Sequence record: NC_042136.1
Direction: 5' to 3' (one strand)
Length of the DNA: 64,000 nucleotides
Every line of letters begins with the position of its first letter. Within the stretch, counting starts at the first letter, position 1. The position numbers and the translations under genes were made by a program. Below the pieces are notes generated by a model. That model was not told the origin of the DNA and did no database searches. It was given only the letters and a program-made list of their open reading frames with translations. Of the stretch, positions 16,177 through 37,079 are shown piece by piece.

Positions 16177-16192
16177 TATATTATCAAAGTGA
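16177..16192 (+). promoter_or_regulatory. Early (virion RNAP) promoter motif
   Basis: TATATTAT-caa-AGTGA; resembles the phiKZ early consensus TATATTAC and recurs in the window. Confidence 0.6.
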
Positions 16193-17377: not shown

Positions 17378-17489
17378 ACAAGTGGGTGACTATACTATAC
17401 TAGAAAAACCTTTTTACATTTCACTTTTTGAACGCCTTTTTCCACATGATTTTGCACTCTAAAAATGCAAGGTCTTAAGGGGGAGGGGG

Positions 17490-17545
17490 GTTCAAGGTTG
17501 GGGTGTTCAAGGTTGATCGGTGTTCAAGGTTAGTCGGTTCAAGTT
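17490..17545. repeat. Four spaced direct repeats GTTCAAGGTT (iteron-like)
   Basis: Copies at 17490, 17505, 17522 and (GTTCAAGTT) 17537; start-to-start spacing 15/17/15. Confidence 0.8.
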
Positions 17546-21848: not shown

Positions 21849-22092
21849 ATTTTTAGTGGATATATATATTATATGTACTAAATAAAAATGTCGAAGACCC
21901 CCTAAAAAGGATGGGAAAGGGTTTTTATTGCATTTGAGTTGAGAGTACTCCTTAGAGTGAACTATGAGGTACGAGTAGTGAACGGTGAGTGTTGTAGTAC
22001 GAAGTACGTAGACACGATGAAAAGGAGTGTACTCTTCAACGAGAATGTAGTACTACCACTGTAAGGGGAGTACGGTAAGGGATTTATAAATC

Positions 22093-22108
22093 TATATTAC
22101 TTAGAAGT
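22093..22108 (+). promoter_or_regulatory. Early promoter motif
   Basis: Exact TATATTAC (phiKZ early consensus) upstream of ORF 22178. Confidence 0.65.
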
Positions 22109-22177
22109 AAAGTAAAACTGTTTTAAACATACTTATAGGTAATACGGATACCATAGACGACAAGCGAGTTTTTAGTT

Positions 22178-22945
22178 ATGAACAGAGTACAAACCATACC
22201 ACATACGAACGTTCATCACGTTCACGGATCAATCGTTACCAGTAACGGTAGACTGAATCGACAAACCAACATTATGATCACGATCAAGGGTCATAAGCAA
22301 GTACGGTTAACCAGAGCACAAAACTGGATAAAGCATTTAACGAAACTACGAGATGGGTTTCCTATTCACTTAATCGATCAAGCGGAAGAGTTATGCTTTA
22401 AGGAAGTACTATTACCGACTTACAAAGATTACGCCGTTAATGTTCCTTATTTGAGTTGTATGTTGCGGTGGGAAGGATTAGAACTATTCGTTCTACCGGG
22501 GTTCTTAGGGAACGCGGTGAGTGCGGAAGGTAAGGTTTACGAGCTGTACTTAGACGAAAGTAAGAAAGAATGGTACTGGGCAGAGATCTATCCTAATCAA
22601 AACGATTGTTATGATTTGATCAACAGCATCGACGGGGATATGTTAGAGCTCAGCGTAGAAGACATTATCTATTTGTTGAAGAGTGATCACGTCACTACAC
22701 AACAAGTCATCGATTTCTACGAGAAGCGTAACGTAGATCGTAAAGCAGAATTAGCGTTAGGAGATGGTTGGGTGAGTATTGATCCAGTAGACGCAGATAA
22801 AACAGAAGCGTTCGGGTTATTAGACAAAGATAACGTGGTCGTTACTTTAGATACTAAACCAAAAACCGTCGTAGAAGCTTTCCTACGAGCTTACCACCAA
22901 GTTAACGGAGATGCCTTAGACTGGCGTAGTCAAGTCGCCGTATAA
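22178..22945 (+). CDS. Hypothetical early protein, 255 aa
   Basis: Downstream of an early promoter; LPGFLGNAVSAEGKV is faintly NUMOD4-like. Confidence 0.65.
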   Translation: MNRVQTIPHTNVHHVHGSIVTSNGRLNRQTNIMITIKGHKQVRLTRAQNWIKHLTKLRDGFPIHLIDQAEELCFKEVLLPTYKDYAVNVPYLSCMLRWEGLELFVLPGFLGNAVSAEGKVYELYLDESKKEWYWAEIYPNQNDCYDLINSIDGDMLELSVEDIIYLLKSDHVTTQQVIDFYEKRNVDRKAELALGDGWVSIDPVDADKTEAFGLLDKDNVVVTLDTKPKTVVEAFLRAYHQVNGDALDWRSQVAV

Positions 22946-23021
22946 GCTTATCACGCCCTACCTCAGCTAAATACTGGGGTAGGGGTTATTTTTCATTTTA
23001 CATTTATTTAAGGATAGCACC

Positions 23022-24170
23022 ATGTCCAACGTCTACGTTCCTAGACTACCAGTTAGTGATGTTAGAGAAGTAAACCAAACTTTTAATTATTTAAAGTCCC
23101 ATTTCAAAACAACAGGATTGATTAGTGAAGTATGCGCTCACCTCAACATCACACCTCATCAACTACGTTACCTGTTTGCTAAAGATGGACTAGAAACCCC
23201 TAAATACTATTTAGCGAAGTTACGTAGTGAATACGCCATGCATGAAGTCACTACGACCGAACGTCCTATTAGCGAGATTATGTCCGATCTCCTTTACGAG
23301 AACGTCCACCGTTTTACAAACTGGTACGTGTTTCACGCTAAACTATCTCCTATTAAGCATCGCATCGCAGTCAAAATGCAAGAACAAGGTAAACAACCAT
23401 CGATGGATACTCCGACTGATGTAGCTAAACGTTTGAAAAACAAAATCGACACAGAGTTTACCGACATCATAGAAATCAAGTCTATCATGGAAGACACCGT
23501 GTTTGCTGATGTCAGTGTACGTCGAGCATTTAAGCGCTTAACTAACCATGCTCCGAAAGAGTACTTGATCAAAGTCCAATGTGATTACGTAGCAAGACGT
23601 ATTAAGAAAGATGGTTGGATAAAACAATCCATTTTGAAACACGTCAAGCAAAGTCGTATTACCGGGTTCAACAACATGTTCAAGAAACATTACGGGATGA
23701 CCACATTTGAATACGGACGAGTGCATAGTTTTGGTTATACTGCGATGGTGTGTGGTGTACAACGCTGGGTAAACCAACACTTAATGGATGAGATCTTAGA
23801 ACACTTAGCCGAAGAAGTCTTCACGGACCATCAACCTATAAGAGACATCCAGAAGTTCTACGGGATCCACTACGGTAACTGGTCTAAGATGTTTGAACAA
23901 ACGGTAGGGATGAACGCTAAATGCACATACCGTGCTTTAGAGCTCGAAGGAGCACTATATCTAATCCAACACACCAGTTGGAACATCGAGCGTATCATCA
24001 GTGTCGCAACCAGTGGCAATAGAAGTTCTTTTTGTATGTCGTTCCGTTCTCACTTTGGTTTAACTCCGACGGAAGCCCGTCGTTATCCTGAACGTGTTAT
24101 GCGTTTAAAGGGAACAGAAGGATTAAGAAAATATATCGAGGTAGGTGTTAAGAACATCACACTAAGTTAA
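23022..24170 (+). CDS. AraC-family protein made of three tandem DNA-binding domains, 382 aa
   Basis: Three repeats of the AraC double-HTH pattern ending in LSPIKHR, FKKHYGMTTFEYG and FRSHFGLTPTEAR; no ligand-binding domain. Confidence 0.8.
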   Translation: MSNVYVPRLPVSDVREVNQTFNYLKSHFKTTGLISEVCAHLNITPHQLRYLFAKDGLETPKYYLAKLRSEYAMHEVTTTERPISEIMSDLLYENVHRFTNWYVFHAKLSPIKHRIAVKMQEQGKQPSMDTPTDVAKRLKNKIDTEFTDIIEIKSIMEDTVFADVSVRRAFKRLTNHAPKEYLIKVQCDYVARRIKKDGWIKQSILKHVKQSRITGFNNMFKKHYGMTTFEYGRVHSFGYTAMVCGVQRWVNQHLMDEILEHLAEEVFTDHQPIRDIQKFYGIHYGNWSKMFEQTVGMNAKCTYRALELEGALYLIQHTSWNIERIISVATSGNRSSFCMSFRSHFGLTPTEARRYPERVMRLKGTEGLRKYIEVGVKNITLS

Positions 24171-24181
24171 GGTAATAAACC

Positions 24182-24889
24182 ATGAAAGCAGAATTTAGAG
24201 ATAAGCTTTTTAAAGATACGTTAAAATGGATAGACAACAACTTTCATCGTTCCATTCGTGCTAAAGACATCGGTGATCAACTGGGTATGAGTATGAATAA
24301 CGTGACTGATCTGTTTCGCCGTCAACTGGATACCACGCCCGGAGAATATCTCCGGGTTGTTCGGATGAAACACGCCAAACAACTATTGATGAAAGGCGTT
24401 AGACCAACCTCAGTTTACAAACAAACCGGCTACAGTTCTTACCGCGCTTTCACTAGAGTCTATCAAATACACTTTGGTGTCCAACCTTCCCAAGACTACC
24501 ATTACTTCATGGGAGTGATAACGGAACCGATGGCAACACCACAAATGGACACACTTTATCCATTTGCCTTACGGAAACGTATCGTCGATTATGTCAAAGA
24601 CAACATTCAGTGTAATTACACGTTACGTGATCTAGAATCTCGTTTCAAGTTACCGGGGAGTTGTTTAGGAGAAATGTTCGTGCACTATTACGACCAGACC
24701 TATACGGACTGGCGTAAATCTTTACGCATGCGCATGGCTTCAGACTTAATCCGAGATAACCCGAAGATTGACGTAACACGTATCCATGGACAACTTGGCA
24801 TCTGTTCCTTCCAATACTTCGTAACTTTATTTAAACAACACTACCGTACGCATCCTCAATCGTACGCGAATGCATTCAAGAGAAAATGA
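24182..24889 (+). CDS. AraC-family protein with two DNA-binding domains, 235 aa
   Basis: LFRRQLDTTPGEYLRVVRMKHAKQLL...GYSSYRAFTRVYQIHFGVQP, plus a second repeat ending FKQHYRTHPQSY. Confidence 0.85.
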   Translation: MKAEFRDKLFKDTLKWIDNNFHRSIRAKDIGDQLGMSMNNVTDLFRRQLDTTPGEYLRVVRMKHAKQLLMKGVRPTSVYKQTGYSSYRAFTRVYQIHFGVQPSQDYHYFMGVITEPMATPQMDTLYPFALRKRIVDYVKDNIQCNYTLRDLESRFKLPGSCLGEMFVHYYDQTYTDWRKSLRMRMASDLIRDNPKIDVTRIHGQLGICSFQYFVTLFKQHYRTHPQSYANAFKRK

Positions 24890-25596
24890 ATATGACTGAC
24901 CACGAATTAGCACTACAAATCCAAGACTACGTTAAAGAAATCTATATGAAACCTCGTCCATCTAACTTGGTTTACACTAAGTTCAATATGAGTGGACCTG
25001 TCATGGGACGTTTCTTGGAACGATTAAATCATCCTTCAATCAAAGTAATGTTGGTGGAAGCCCGTATGGAGCGAGCGAAAGAACTCCTAGCACAAGACAT
25101 GGTTAATGTTCCGGGGATCCATACCCATGTAGGTTACTCTACTCGTAATAGTTTCGAGCGTCGTTTCAAAGATCACGTTGGTATGTCCCCAGCGGTCTAT
25201 CGCAAAAAGATCCAAGAACAACAAACCGAGCAAGAACACATGACTTACTCTAAACGAGTTAACGAGGTTACTCAAAACGAACTCCGTAAATACTTGATCA
25301 AACACTTCCGGGAACCAGAACTGACGTTGAACCGTGTGCAAGATGTTTTTAACCTCAGCAAGGATGAGATCCAAGAGATCATCGGCATCGTTTACAATTG
25401 CACGTTTGAAGAACGACTCTTAACTATGCGTTTAGAAGAAGTCGGTAACCTTTTAGTGAAAACCACACGAACACCACGACAACTCTCTACCGAGTGTGGG
25501 TTTGTGAGTTATCACTATTTCGTGGGTCAATTCACTAAACGTTTTACGGTAGGTCCTAAACACTATCGTCAACTAAAATTAATCAAGGCTATATAA
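24886..25596 (+). CDS. AraC-family protein with two DNA-binding domains, 236 aa
   Basis: RMERAKELL...VGYSTRNSFERRFKDHVGMSPAVYR and CGFVSYHYFVGQFTKRFTVGPKHYR; ATGA overlap with the previous gene. Confidence 0.85.
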   Translation: MNMTDHELALQIQDYVKEIYMKPRPSNLVYTKFNMSGPVMGRFLERLNHPSIKVMLVEARMERAKELLAQDMVNVPGIHTHVGYSTRNSFERRFKDHVGMSPAVYRKKIQEQQTEQEHMTYSKRVNEVTQNELRKYLIKHFREPELTLNRVQDVFNLSKDEIQEIIGIVYNCTFEERLLTMRLEEVGNLLVKTTRTPRQLSTECGFVSYHYFVGQFTKRFTVGPKHYRQLKLIKAI

Positions 25597-25605
25597 CTGG
25601 GGTGT
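25590..25605 (+). promoter_or_regulatory. Early promoter motif facing a non-coding region
   Basis: TATATAAC-tgg-GGTGT, overlapping the stop codon of the third AraC gene. Confidence 0.65.
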
Positions 25606-25790
25606 AATACTATGTGGGTAATGACTAGCTGACCATCTAAATGAAGAATTGAACAATCTTGGTGTATACCGCAATTGACGACATAATTTGGAATCTATCC
25701 TCGGCACCCACATCACCCTTTCACTAATTGGGTGTACAAAACGGGTATAAAGCGCAAGGCCGTCATTTTACGATGACGGCACTTATTATG
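25606..25790 (+). ncRNA. Putative structured small RNA 1
   Basis: Lies between an early promoter and the hairpin GCCGTCAT/ATGACGGC (25759-25780); no usable + ORF; stems ATGTGGGT/ACCCACAT and CACCC/GGGTG. Confidence 0.4.
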
Positions 25791-25859
25791 TTGGAAAGTA
25801 AGTACATGAATGTTTATTCCCTTGTTTTCATTTTTGTTGAGCCCTTACTTTCTGACGCC

Positions 25860-26089
25860 ATATATCGGCGGAAGGTTTCCTTCATTCCCTGTCGCCGGTA
25901 AGTTCACCTGACCGCATCGATAAAGGTGAATAGCTGTCTCTACAGCCGGCTGTGCTCTTTCCCAACATGGGTCCTCCAATTCCCCTGTTGGTCCTCCTTG
26001 TGAGAGCATAGTTCGGGTGTTCCGACACCGCCACTGCTTTCATGCAATGCTTTGCAAACCATCTCCTTGACGGGAGATGGTTCTTTTTT
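25860..26089 (+). ncRNA. Putative structured small RNA 2 (multi-branch, CCUCC-rich loops)
   Basis: GC-rich non-coding stretch with about 7 nested or adjacent helices, G-U pairs on the + strand, ending in an intrinsic terminator. Confidence 0.5.
26057..26089 (+). terminator. Intrinsic terminator
   Basis: AACCATCTCC-TTGACG-GGAGATGGTT followed by CTTTTTT. Confidence 0.8.
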
Positions 26090-26235
26090 GCTTTTATACT
26101 TATTTTAAACTTTACGGTAAACTTCCTGTAACGCTTTCTAAGCCTGTTTACCCCATCTTACCACCCAATGTAAAGGGTAACTGCGTGCGCCATCATTTAG
26201 GTGCGTTTCAAGCGGTTTAAACACGGAATTAACTT

Positions 26236-32887: not shown

Positions 32888-34996
32888 ATGGCGATCGGCG
32901 GTAAAGACGATTGGGAAAAAGTAATTGAAGAAAATGAACGTAATACTAGTGACGTTCCATCTCAAGAACCTATCCCAGAACAACCAATTGTAAAACAACC
33001 AACCACATCTCAAACTGCACAACAAGGAGCAGAAAAAATGTCTCAAGCAAATAAAACACAATCTCTACTAGACTTCGCATCAGTTCTTGGTATGAACTCT
33101 GTAATGTCTGGCGGTCGTTCAGTTCCTGTTGTGAACGAAGTAATGAAAGCTTTGAACGACTTTAAAGAAGAGAAAGGTAAATCTTCTCTAGCACCTGCAC
33201 TACAAGCCATCATCCCTCAAGAAGTTATTTCTATGGATGCTAACTTGTCTCCAGTGCTACCGGGCATCATCCTAGCGCGCCGTGTTGGTACTTCAATGAT
33301 CATCGCTCCTATCATGTTCTCTAACCGTGAACTAGCGATTCAACTTGAAGAGATCCACACTAACGGTCTAATGGGTCAAAACACTCCAAGCAAAGTTCAG
33401 ATCAAACAAGCACCTAACCGTTACATGGATAGCAACGTTATCCGTAACATCATGGACTCGATCAAACTTCGCTACGCTGCGGATGGTGTTAACGATGTTC
33501 AACTGATCACTTCTCGCGTAATCAACTTGGAAGATTACCAAACTCCAGAAAACAAAGAAGCAGGTCTACCTCAGTTGCTTACTGGTGTCATCCTAGATGA
33601 GTGGGAACGTGGTATGAAGATCACACTAACCAAAGCAATGGTTAAAGCGCAACACGATCTGAAAACTCCGTTCATTGACTCTAAAGGTCAAATCGATAAA
33701 AACGCTTACGGTCCAACTAAGTCTGCTACAGCGCGTATCGAATCAGTGAAAACTCAAAGCGGTGCACCTCTAACTATCGATGGTGTTCCATGTTCAGCGA
33801 ACATGACCGTTCAGCTTCAAACTGCGCCAAAAGAAGGTCAACACCTAAATTCAGATGCCGCTCGTGGTATCGTAACAGCTTACTCTACTGTACAGCTTAT
33901 CGGTGTACCTTTCGCAGTTTACACAGCGAACCTAATGTCTCGTCCACAACAAATGGCGTTCAACCCAATGATGAATGCTGGTGTTGACGCGTACCCTCAC
34001 GGTTACCACCCACTACAAGCAGTTGTTGTAATGAACACTGCACGTGCACAAGCACAAATGGGTAACAACTCTGGTATCGCTTCATTCCTAATGGGTCTGT
34101 ACGCGAACATGACGGTTAACCACAACCACTTGTTCACTGAGCCACTACGTCTAATGTCTAACGGTGCTCGCGGTAACTTGTCTCACATTGAACGTCGTAT
34201 CGATGACATGATCATGGGTGCACTTCCAAAACGTGATGACAAAACTAAGATCACTGAAGCTCGTCTAAAAGACATGGACTTCACTTCAAGCTGGATCCGT
34301 CGTAACATTGCACCACATGCATCTTACGCGATCGACCTAGCAGAGTTCGGTAACGAAGCAGCCCTAGGCAACTTCCTACTTAACCTAGCAGGTAAAACCA
34401 ACAATGCTTCTGAGAACAAGATGACAGTAGTTCGTGTTCTTGATGCCATCACAGATGGTGAAGCAACTCGTCGCATCAACGAAAACCGTCAAGCTGGTAA
34501 AGGTTGGACTATGGACAAAGATATCCTTTGTGCATCTTCTATCATCCTACCAGTAGGTACATTCAAACACAACGGCCAACTACACTCGTTGGAAGAAGTG
34601 GATGAAATGTTCCTAAGCCGTCTGTGCCCAACTGATTCAACTCCAATGATTCAGTACCTAGGCGCTATCTACGGTGACAACGGTCAAACTCCAGAAGCAG
34701 TGCGTCGTTACAAAATGACTACTATGCTTCCTACTTTGATCAACGATGATGTGAACATCACTGGTACAGCTCGTCGTCACTACGTGTCTCCTGAGTTCGC
34801 TGAGTTCCTAGGTCTATGTCTAGACAAACTAGGTAACTTGAACGCTTCTGGTACTATGGGTACGTTCGCTTCTAACGTTGCGATCTACGCTCCATCAGTT
34901 GAGTTCGCAGTAATGGCAGCAGCAGGTGCTTCTGGTGCTTACATGGCTACTAACGGCGGCTTGATGGGTAACGCTTCTGGTGTTACTTACGCTTAA
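32888..34996 (+). CDS. chmA: Chimallin (major phage nuclear shell protein)
   Basis: Directly upstream of nvRNAP beta'; blocks ASYAIDLAEFGNEAAL, IILPVGTF and VNITGTARRHYVSPEF align by eye with recalled 201phi2-1 gp105 segments; disordered N-tail, Gly/Ala-rich C-tail; highly expressed codon usage. Confidence 0.85.
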   Translation: MAIGGKDDWEKVIEENERNTSDVPSQEPIPEQPIVKQPTTSQTAQQGAEKMSQANKTQSLLDFASVLGMNSVMSGGRSVPVVNEVMKALNDFKEEKGKSSLAPALQAIIPQEVISMDANLSPVLPGIILARRVGTSMIIAPIMFSNRELAIQLEEIHTNGLMGQNTPSKVQIKQAPNRYMDSNVIRNIMDSIKLRYAADGVNDVQLITSRVINLEDYQTPENKEAGLPQLLTGVILDEWERGMKITLTKAMVKAQHDLKTPFIDSKGQIDKNAYGPTKSATARIESVKTQSGAPLTIDGVPCSANMTVQLQTAPKEGQHLNSDAARGIVTAYSTVQLIGVPFAVYTANLMSRPQQMAFNPMMNAGVDAYPHGYHPLQAVVVMNTARAQAQMGNNSGIASFLMGLYANMTVNHNHLFTEPLRLMSNGARGNLSHIERRIDDMIMGALPKRDDKTKITEARLKDMDFTSSWIRRNIAPHASYAIDLAEFGNEAALGNFLLNLAGKTNNASENKMTVVRVLDAITDGEATRRINENRQAGKGWTMDKDILCASSIILPVGTFKHNGQLHSLEEVDEMFLSRLCPTDSTPMIQYLGAIYGDNGQTPEAVRRYKMTTMLPTLINDDVNITGTARRHYVSPEFAEFLGLCLDKLGNLNASGTMGTFASNVAIYAPSVEFAVMAAAGASGAYMATNGGLMGNASGVTYA

Positions 34997-35088: not shown

Positions 35089-37079
35089 GTGATGTCACAC
35101 GTTACCGACGATATTGCAGTAAACGTATTAGCTGGAGAATCATTTGAAGATCTATTGCCTATTAAGCAATTTGAACGATACCAACAACAACTTGGCTATC
35201 GCATAACTGATGACCAGTCTTACTATGCTCCTCTTTATCCTGCGTTTCGTAATTACGATTTCGCGCATGATACGTCTAAGTCTCAACCTATTTACTTGAA
35301 CGACTTTGATTTCTGTTTAGAAGAAGACCGAGAGCGATTAGAAAAACTAATACGTGTGGACTTTGATACGGATACTTTTGAAACGACCGCATCGTGTGGT
35401 TGTGAAAAACCGTTGAAGGGCAACCACCTAATTGGTTCTGGTCGTGTGTGTAAGAACTGTGGTAACCAAGTAGAACGTTTGGTCGACACCGAACTAACTA
35501 CAAAAGTCTGGCTACGCTTACCCACCGGTGTTCATTCTTTCATTAACCCGGCGTTCTATCGCACATTCTTGCAAAAGATAGCGACAGCGTCACCTAAGAT
35601 AGAAATCATTACGTACATCATTGATCCTTCTTATCGTCGTAAAATAAACTCACAAAGCTCAGAGAAACTCCGAGAGCTCCAAAGTCATCTACGTTTGTTA
35701 TTAAACAAATTAGACTTGAATGAATTCGTTGTACACGCGGATACCATCATGGAGCATTTCTTATTAGGGGAAGGTCGTAAGATCACCGCTCTTAAGAACT
35801 CGGATGCCAAAGAGATCATGTGTGGGTTCATTGACTTTAAAGATGAAGTGTTCACCAAGTATCTACCAGTTCCTAATAAGCTCTCCACGGTTATTGAGAA
35901 ATCAGGTAAAGAACGTTATGCGTCTTCTAGTCAGCTTAAAATGGATTCAACGTATATGTCCATTGCTGATACGAAAGACACTACCGATCTTTATACGGTG
36001 AATGAGTTTGATATCAGTGCTAGCATTGATCGTGTTGGTAAAGGTATCGTCGCCTTATCTCAACAAAACGCTGCACAAATGAAAGACTTCTTATTCCCTA
36101 AACCGGGAGCAGCACGTAAGCTGGTAGCCTCTGGTTCATTGCCACTGACAGGACGTTCAGTTATTACGTCTAAAACCGGTATCCATAACCCGGGAATGAT
36201 TGAAGTTCCTTGGATTATGGCACTGGCTCAATTAGAGAAACACATTTTATCTCATTTATATCGTAAGGGATACAGTCCGACGGCAGCCTTAGAAAAGATT
36301 TCTAAAGCAGCTCATTATTTGGATCCTGACATCGATGCGTTCTTTGCTTATCATGAAGAACGAAATGACATTGTGTGTAAATCTGGTCGTATGCCATCCA
36401 TCCAGTATCTCTCTCGCCGGACGTTCTTCGCCCGCATTAAACGAGATCTGGGAGACCAATCTATAGGACTTCCAATACTGTCAGTAGGTCCTTTTAATGC
36501 TGACTTCGACGGTGAATATTTGCCGTCTTTAAACTTCTTTAATTGCTGGAACTCCGTAAAGCTCTATTTACTACAATAGTTGAGTGATCGACTATGAATG
36601 TGGACGAAAGTCAGAAATAAAAATAGAGATGTCCTATGCTTAATATCCTTATCTGGGATTAGATGAGGTGCTAAGGGATGTGTAATCGGAAATCAGCAGC
36701 GAAGACTCTCACGTAGAGTAACGTTCAACGACTAGGTGGGGAGAAGTCTCCTCGAACAGGAAGAGTGGAATCAAGGAATGATGAAGCTAAGATATAGTCT
36801 CGCCCGGTGTGAAAGTATCGGAAGTCACCATTTGGGAGGTGACTGGCGGATTAACGACCCGCTTTAAAAAGCACTAGCAATAGTGTAACAATGTGTGCGG
36901 ACCAGATGGTCCTATTCTTCCTGCCTGATCTAAGATCTAAGGCAGTTAGTTATGGGGCATTCGGTCACCAGTCAGTATTTGATGAAAATAAACCATTCAC
37001 CATTAGTCGACACTATAAACAACCGTCGACCAACTTGATGAATATCAACAACGTAATGCGTAAACTGGAGTTCAAGTAA
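35089..37079 (+). CDS. Non-virion RNAP beta' N-terminal subunit (phiKZ gp55-56.1-like), spliced: exon 1 35089-36513, exon 2 36900-37079, 534 aa
   Basis: Zn-finger CGC...CKNCG, TGRSVI and RMPS motifs; splicing restores the catalytic FNADFDG|DQM motif in frame. Confidence 0.9.
36514..36899 (+). mobile_element. Group I self-splicing intron without an ORF, 386 nt
   Basis: P1 GACGGT/GCCGTC with U-G at the 5' splice site; P AATTGCTGGAA (36541), Q AATCAGCAGC (36691), R GTTCAACGACTA (36723), S AAGATATAGTCT (36789); terminal G at 36899. Confidence 0.92.

Follow-up and report, generated by a model that had tools for sequence, protein, structure and literature searches.

What would a lytic bacteriophage do with proteins composed only of chained DNA-binding domains? 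The question is raised by three adjacent genes, here called A, B and C, in a stretch of 64,000 nucleotides (nt; the window) from Vibrio phage VP4B (NC_042136 / KC131130). This phage, a Tidunavirus of the Gorgonvirinae, has a genome of 236 kb and infects V. harveyi; the window spans genome positions 62001-126000 on the plus strand, and its bases 22900-25800 match VP4B at 100% identity. VP4B is a member of the nucleus-forming jumbo phages, and formation of the chimallin shell has been demonstrated in its relatives phiKT1019 and phiKT1028 (PMC10587174). RefSeq labels all three genes (gp065-067) “transcriptional regulator.” The reading that we favor, with a probability of about 0.42, is that the genes form an operon whose products are made early and bind DNA multivalently, leaning to lineage-specific sites on phage DNA. 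Multivalent reading of DNA by early-made proteins is the likely mechanism, judging from the sequences; as to the target, we lean to phage DNA, slightly ahead of host DNA.

Architecture and Conservation of the AraC-Type Units

Gene A (gp065, 23022-24170, plus strand) encodes 382 amino acids (aa) that divide into three AraC-type units at approximately residues 1-125, 126-245 and 246-382. Gene B (gp066, 24182-24889, plus strand) encodes 235 aa with two units (approximately residues 1-112 and 113-235), and gene C (gp067, 24886-25596, plus strand) also encodes two, in 236 aa, or 234 aa when counted from the ATG at 24892. The Pfam family HTH_18 matches three stretches of A, two of B and two of C (E 1e-26, 2e-26 and 8e-23, respectively). 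When the seven pieces (117-132 aa) are excised, each matches HTH_18 singly (E 4e-17 to 2e-7), two of them scoring marginally below the 33.6-bit cut-off on their own. A scan of the whole genome returns the identical seven units and one weak additional match elsewhere. No domain other than HTH_18 was found in A, B or C with Pfam, and AraC-type units account fully for the lengths of the three chains.

The AlphaFold2 model of gene A, built on a 12-sequence alignment, has a predicted local distance difference test score (pLDDT) of 89.4 and a predicted template modeling score (pTM) of 0.62. It consists of three 7-helix units connected by short linkers, a β-hairpin (residues 240-249) and one C-terminal helix. 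Because these elements fill the model, gene A has no space for a sensor or dimerization domain. An earlier note on this DNA had described a 3+2+2 array of AraC units, comprising 14 helix-turn-helix motifs (HTHs), in which sensing and dimerization domains are missing. The count is borne out by the profile matches together with the gene A model, and the absence of such domains by the filled chain and the lack of any further Pfam domain.

Compared with solved AraC-type domains in Foldseek, single units reach template modeling (TM) scores of 0.86 for YesN, 0.77 for 3oio and 0.74 for SoxS, and 0.72 for MarA (1bl0), the last with a root-mean-square deviation (rmsd) of 2.4. By sequence, the closest characterized structures in the PDB are RamA, SoxS and MarA (E 1e-6 to 4e-6), marginally outscored by the uncharacterized AraC-type domains 3oio and 3mn2. 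The profile phrog_7620 matches all three proteins over its full length (E 8e-175 for A, 1e-74 for B and 4e-61 for C). Against the NCBIfam models of MarA, SoxS and RamA, A-C score far under the cut-offs, and in the ESM Atlas A and B fall among generic small AraC clusters. Prediction of an A+B+C hetero-complex gave a score of 0.00, which is not evidence either way. Genes A-C thus agree with the definition of the AraC/XylS DNA-binding domain (DBD), which has about 100 aa, two HTHs, a long joining helix and seven helices in all. They depart from the classical two-domain plan of AraC, XylS, ToxT and ExsA, with its N-terminal ligand or dimerization domain, and also from the single-unit form of MarA, SoxS and RamA, as they have three, two and two units per chain.

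The coding sequences are closely packed. Genes A and B are spaced by 11 nt in VP4B, and B and C overlap (ATGA) provided that translation of C begins at ATG 24886, the first of two ATGs; the RefSeq start is at 24892. In the relatives, the A/B and B/C junctions mostly overlap, by 4-30 nt. The coupling of start and stop codons proposed earlier is therefore tenable for B/C, if ATG 24886 is used, but not for A/B in VP4B.

The family is narrowly distributed. Searches with A and B (tblastn) recovered it in 15 of 50,697 phage records, all of them Gorgonvirinae that infect Vibrio or Photobacterium, and the remaining matches were single domains in doubtful “phage” records; the rarity of this architecture among phages, claimed in the earlier note, stands. 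When the three-unit protein was compared by HMMER with 1.84 billion representative proteins, six clusters had E < 1e-30, with lengths of 382-392 aa, all originating from Gorgonvirinae-like phages or contigs of up to 244 kb. The next match, a three-unit protein of 366 aa (E 4e-10), lies on a distant 71-kb contig that has gene A without B and C, and that also encodes chimallin, PhuZ and a DNA polymerase with 73% identity to that of VP4B. The 3+2+2 operon recurs in synteny in pTD1, phiKT1028, PDCC-1, Aphrodite1, phiKT1019, USC-1 and three metagenome contigs, and the synteny extends over a whole 12-kb block, up to the DNA polymerase gene. Among the matches listed in a scan of IMG/VR with the gene A alignment, pTD1 stands alone, and word-indexed protein searches gave close relatives only. 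The sequencing runs that carry the locus are DNA runs, mostly aquaculture metagenomes; none of the runs listed with the array locus is RNA. For the gene C orthologue of pTD1, gp140 (L002:6866-7576), RefSeq annotates 197 aa, probably from a start placed too late: the frame stays open back to 6866, and initiation at ATG 6872 would yield a 234-aa product in line with the remaining orthologues.

When 73 units were placed in a tree, those of any one of the seven positions grouped in a separate clade, with six label changes, the minimum possible. It follows that all seven units are older than the divergence of the group, and that none has been lost or homogenized since. Between VP4B and pTD1, the proportion of non-synonymous differences (pN) is 0.16-0.22, against a saturated synonymous proportion (pS) of 0.72-0.78, implying strong purifying selection on A-C. 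No stop codon or frameshift occurs in the 31 array genes translated from 11 loci. Despite the purifying selection, A-C are among the fastest-evolving genes of the syntenic block: identity to Aphrodite1 is 27% for A, 37% for B and 27% for C, compared with 38-60% for their syntenic neighbors.

The weak eighth HTH_18 match of the genome-wide scan (genome 206640-206864) led to a fourth AraC-like gene, D, located outside the window at genome positions 206556-207500 (L006:3057-4001), beside an RNase H gene. Its product of 314 aa (phrog_27247) is annotated as hypothetical. Alignment of gene D to the profile of the phage units with hhalign yields three alignments (98%, 85%, and 94%), and a hidden Markov model of the units built without gene D detects it with a full E of 4.8e-16, the third match covering half a unit. 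The structure model, which rests on a 4-sequence alignment, is poor (pLDDT 53) and was used for the helix pattern alone. Gene D occurs in the same 15 phage records as the array and diverges equally fast, and its start lies about 50 nt downstream of an early-type promoter-like site of 41.5 bits. By these sequence comparisons, the four DBD-only proteins of VP4B would together contain about 9.5 AraC-like units, about 2.5 of them in diverged form in gene D.

Promoter Context and the Adjoining Non-coding Stretch

Enrichment searches, genome-wide and in upstream regions, yielded one strongly over-represented motif, with the consensus TAaaTttTTtCAAAtCTATATTAtcaagGTGTAA. It parallels the early consensus of phage AR9, TATATTAT-N6-G, which has been mapped for the virion RNA polymerase (PMC5312081). 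A matrix built from the site at 22093 and 14 others finds 24 sites of 22-44 bits in the VP4B genome, all on the plus strand; shuffled genomes contain 0-2 sites and reach at most 21 bits. Within the window, the early-promoter-like sites are at 16177, 22093, 25590, 32801, 38257, 42717, 48420, 54700 and 62365, all on the plus strand.

The site that concerns the array most directly is the one at 22093 (22077-22114, plus strand), which reads CTATATTAC, about 5 nt and G, and scores 26.9 bits, a value that is partly circular because the site contributed to the matrix. Downstream of it is a gene of 255 aa (22178-22945, plus strand; phrog_24322) that directly precedes the array, is conserved, and is the first gene of the transcription unit. 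In eight relatives, the core CTATAT(T/A)AC stands 80-110 nt before the orthologue of this gene; in contig L007, it precedes a different, inserted gene. The 255-aa protein is 54-76% identical in relatives that have all three array genes, and 43% in the distant contig L007. Its conservation far exceeds that of the AraC genes, and it has no informative family match (a weak one to RXYLT1_N, E 3.5e-4, and nothing in the ESM Atlas).

Between this gene and gene A lies a G+C-rich hairpin followed by a T-run (22956-22994, plus strand), resembling a terminator or attenuator. Nine relatives have a hairpin at the same place, with stem sequences that differ with compensation, and L007 has none. The 27-45 nt that separate the hairpin from the ATG of gene A do not contain the early motif. 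We infer from this arrangement that early transcription of A-C proceeds by read-through and stays below that of the gene upstream.

The putative chimallin gene (32888-34996) has an early-type site as well, 87 nt ahead of it. The Pfam chimallin model does not match this VP4B protein, which was named by homology to a contig gene that has a Pfam chimallin match.

At the other end of the array, an early-promoter-like site covers the stop codon of gene C (25574-25611, plus strand; 24.6 bits, rank 23 of 24, best shuffle 21). Its core, TATATAAC, is formed by the last codons of gene C (Ala-Ile-stop) in VP4B and pTD1 only, and is not present in phiKT1028 or in Aphroditevirus-like phages. The earlier proposal that a promoter lies exactly at the end of the array is thus plausible for VP4B and pTD1, but the core is not conserved beyond these two. 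Directly after the array, a TATGTG block (25611-25616, plus strand) is conserved in all ten relatives. The promoter of the phiKZ non-virion RNA polymerase is TATG, in which the G is the start site (PMC5312081). The block may be a late promoter of this type or the 5′ end of a non-coding RNA. A recurring promoter class of the form GTGTA...TATGT was considered and rejected, with just six scattered matches in the genome.

The non-coding stretch that follows (25617-26095, plus strand; about 450 nt) is kept in ten phages, with the conserved blocks GGTGTATACCGCGAG, GTATAAAGCG, AGCCGGCTG and CAGTTCGGGT. It includes terminator-like hairpins at 25759-25780 and 26057-26082, an intrinsic terminator, and a long-range helix in which changes in the two strands compensate each other; a comparison with Rfam gave no matching family. 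In Aphroditevirus-like phages, the PhuZ tubulin gene follows the non-coding stretch, as a comparison of 25597-26235 with L004, L005 and L007-L011 reveals, and in VP4B, pTD1 and phiKT1028 it is missing exactly after this stretch. Loss of PhuZ in the Tidunavirus lineage has already been published (PMC10587174, PMC11724907).

Two further features of the window are recorded here. At 17481-17545, within a gene-free region of 560 bp, four copies of GGTTCAAGGTT are arranged with a spacing of 15-17 bp; these copies are iteron-like, and could mark an origin or serve as an array for protein binding. A group I intron is reported by Rfam at 36461-36821 (54.9 bits, E 3.5e-11), with which the open reading frame at 35089-36579 overlaps at its end.

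Proposed DNA Reading and Its Possible Targets

All units of VP4B are basic, with isoelectric points of 8.6-10.0, as are those of the relatives with few exceptions. Positions equivalent to base contacts were transferred to the units through HMMER alignment to 1bl0, using W42, Q45, R46, Q91, Q92, T93, T95 and R96, which we take to be the base-contact residues of MarA. For VP4B against pTD1, identity is 88% at the contact-equivalent positions and 68% at the rest (p 0.0014). In comparisons across genera, the values are 11-21% at the contacts and 26-31% at the rest (p 0.006 to 0.2), and the lower identity at the contacts includes the comparison of phiKT1028 with phiKT1019. Both of these are phages of V. 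parahaemolyticus that have been combined as a cocktail (PMC10587174). Such a pattern fits specific reading heads that would have been retuned between lineages, their targets drifting with the phage, and by this comparison of sequences it would count to a small degree against both decay and conserved host targets.

In the mechanism that we favor, A-C would most likely be one operon expressed early, with transcription beginning one gene upstream, at the conserved promoter of early (virion RNA polymerase) type, and passing through the hairpin. The covalent fusion of units would substitute for the dimerization domain of ordinary AraC regulators. Each unit would read about 20 bp, as MarA does, and each protein would then clamp two or three neighboring sites, 40-60 bp in total, or bridge separate sites. 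If these sites are on phage DNA, their occupation could serve gene timing or the organization of the chromosome inside the phage nucleus.

Several observations weigh against this mechanism or against its placement on phage DNA. Transcription may end at the hairpin before gene A, in which case the promoter would no longer indicate when A-C are made. The pairs behind the reading-head statistics are related and not independent of one another, and of the four pairs tested between genera, two are not significant. Some first HTHs have an acidic recognition helix (unit C2 and, in part, B2), and helix 6 frequently lacks its conserved arginine; hence not all 14 HTHs need contact DNA. Genome k-mer and upstream-region enrichment did not find an iterated candidate site beyond the promoter motif: these searches gave the early-promoter motif, the Shine-Dalgarno sequence and T-runs, and the other enriched 10-mers were words of coding sequence. 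In nucleus-forming phages, moreover, the phage DNA is enclosed, and A-C would need to be imported. AraC activators normally act via σ70 and the α subunit of the host RNA polymerase. The phage family to which VP4B belongs uses its own RNA polymerases, and we know of no equivalents of σ70 or α in these enzymes.

A more elaborate proposal, which we regard as unlikely, is that of a polydactyl system, in which all four proteins, with about 9.5 specialized units, would be imported and would read long composite sites on phage DNA for the two phage polymerases. If it were true, AraC domains would work with a non-canonical polymerase or as chromosome architecture, since the phage polymerases are not known to have a σ70 or an α subunit. 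Somewhat less doubtful is that the same multivalent readers act on the host chromosome. As early cytoplasmic proteins they would coat or read Vibrio DNA, and would activate, silence or compact host genes. Proteins of this kind meet host DNA by default, the phage DNA being enclosed, and AraC-family activation uses the host RNA polymerase. The early-type promoter context fits equally, and A-C are accessory, clade-specific and fast evolving, as genes for host interaction often are. A precedent is provided by gp094 of Erwinia phage RAY, located on the host nucleoid (PMC10299810; PMC13282480). Against this reading, the reading-head positions are not conserved among phages of the same or closely related Vibrio hosts, which would be surprising if host targets were conserved, although binding of low specificity, or lineage-specific targets, would accommodate this divergence.

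Binding to protein rather than DNA seems improbable. The units would in this case be decoys, for example titrating the C-terminal domain of the host RNA polymerase α subunit or region 4 of σ70, and would thereby shut down host transcription. SoxS and MarA do bind RNA polymerase off DNA, several recognition helices of A-C are atypical or acidic, and multiple copies per chain would raise avidity. The units are, however, basic throughout, their DNA-facing positions are the best conserved between close relatives, and residues for contact with RNA polymerase could not be identified; conserved ones are not known to be defined for the MarA-type family as a whole. The idea is pure inference. Marginally more improbable still is a single module in which A-C bind or regulate the neighboring non-coding RNA. 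The array adjoins the non-coding stretch in all ten relatives, including the distant contig with gene A only, but adjacency has little weight where the whole 12-kb block is syntenic. In addition, gene D is located elsewhere, AraC domains are not known as RNA binders, and the non-coding stretch appears to own a start signal and terminators. The earlier suggestion that the array and the non-coding RNA constitute one host-takeover module is unsupported, as its basis was the same synteny.

The least probable explanation is that the array consists of ordinary captured bacterial regulators, or of decaying duplicates with no special role. Bacterial proteins with two AraC domains do exist, and one of them, DBD-only and 255 aa long, is encoded next to a DBD-only single unit. 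Yet the best non-phage match to the three-unit protein has an E of 2.8e-10 and 25% identity, and the seven units predate the clade. Decay, for its part, is at odds with the strong purifying selection and with the intact reading frames of all 31 translated array genes. The possibility raised before, that such arrays are common in bacteria and were simply captured, is contradicted by the lack of a close bacterial homologue among the representative proteins searched and by the age of the units. Early-made, multivalent readers of lineage-specific sites on phage DNA remain our tentative preference.

Significance and Comparison with Known Systems

In nucleus-forming jumbo phages, gene timing and the accessory factors that serve the two RNA polymerases or act on the host chromosome are largely unknown, and the recent reviews that were searched mention one RAY regulator as the sole phage transcription factor. 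The array offers a concrete and easily testable candidate, being clade-wide, probably early, and built of two or three fused AraC units per protein. It would also be a natural example of long-site specificity through the chaining of AraC domains, a field in which the tandem proteins present in databases are unstudied. Should A-C prove to bind the host nucleoid without specificity, the result would be a modest addition to the biology of host takeover.

The AraC-type HTH of these genes has already been recognized: phrog_7620, the RefSeq annotation and one sentence by Iyer et al. 2021 (PMC7824862), about the AraC-like HTH factors of group 1 jumbo phages, refer to the same genes or gene family. 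In the literature, no description was found of the DBD-only concatenation, the seven conserved positions, the fourth gene or the promoter context. The concatenated DBD-only design, the seven separately kept units, gene D and the early-type promoter context thus appear to be undescribed so far. The earlier note had also overlooked gene D, the early-type promoter upstream with its hairpin, and the occurrence of tandem AraC domains in some bacterial proteins.

The architecture is not exclusive to phages, as bacterial parallels exist. Among the weaker matches are bacterial and metagenomic proteins with two HTH_18 units, some DBD-only (P0026, 255 aa; P0023, 241 aa), others bearing a sensor (P0014, PocR and two units; P0050, AraC_binding and two units). 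AlphaFold DB clusters cover two or three units of gene A in alignment, one of them aligning to units 2-3 with an rmsd of 3.8 over 221 residues. On a bacterial-looking metagenome contig (at L014:617-2062), the gene for a DBD-only protein of 255 aa with two AraC units is followed by one for a DBD-only protein of 139 aa with a single unit; VanW, LexA and beta-lactamase-family genes are present on the same contig. A literature search on bacterial tandem-AraC proteins found no paper. Their likeness to A-C resides in the two HTH_18 units per chain, in some cases without any other domain. They differ in being at most 20-28% identical to gene A, and none is found in a 3+2+2 operon or has been characterized. 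No three-unit protein close to gene A was found outside phages, the only such match being on a phage contig.

Within the chimalliviruses, RAY gp094 is comparable as an accessory HTH regulator, and has been placed on the host nucleoid by microscopy (PMC10299810; PMC13282480). It is an XRE-type regulator, however, a single-domain protein of another HTH superfamily that is not homologous to A-C. MarA, SoxS and RamA, the closest characterized structures by sequence, also match in fold (TM 0.72-0.74) and share the 7-helix, two-HTH structure without a sensor or dimerization domain. These are single units of 107-129 aa that bind as monomers to one 20-bp site and recruit the host RNA polymerase. By contrast, VP4B has two or three fused units per chain, distributed over four genes of a lytic phage, with 13-30% identity to these regulators.

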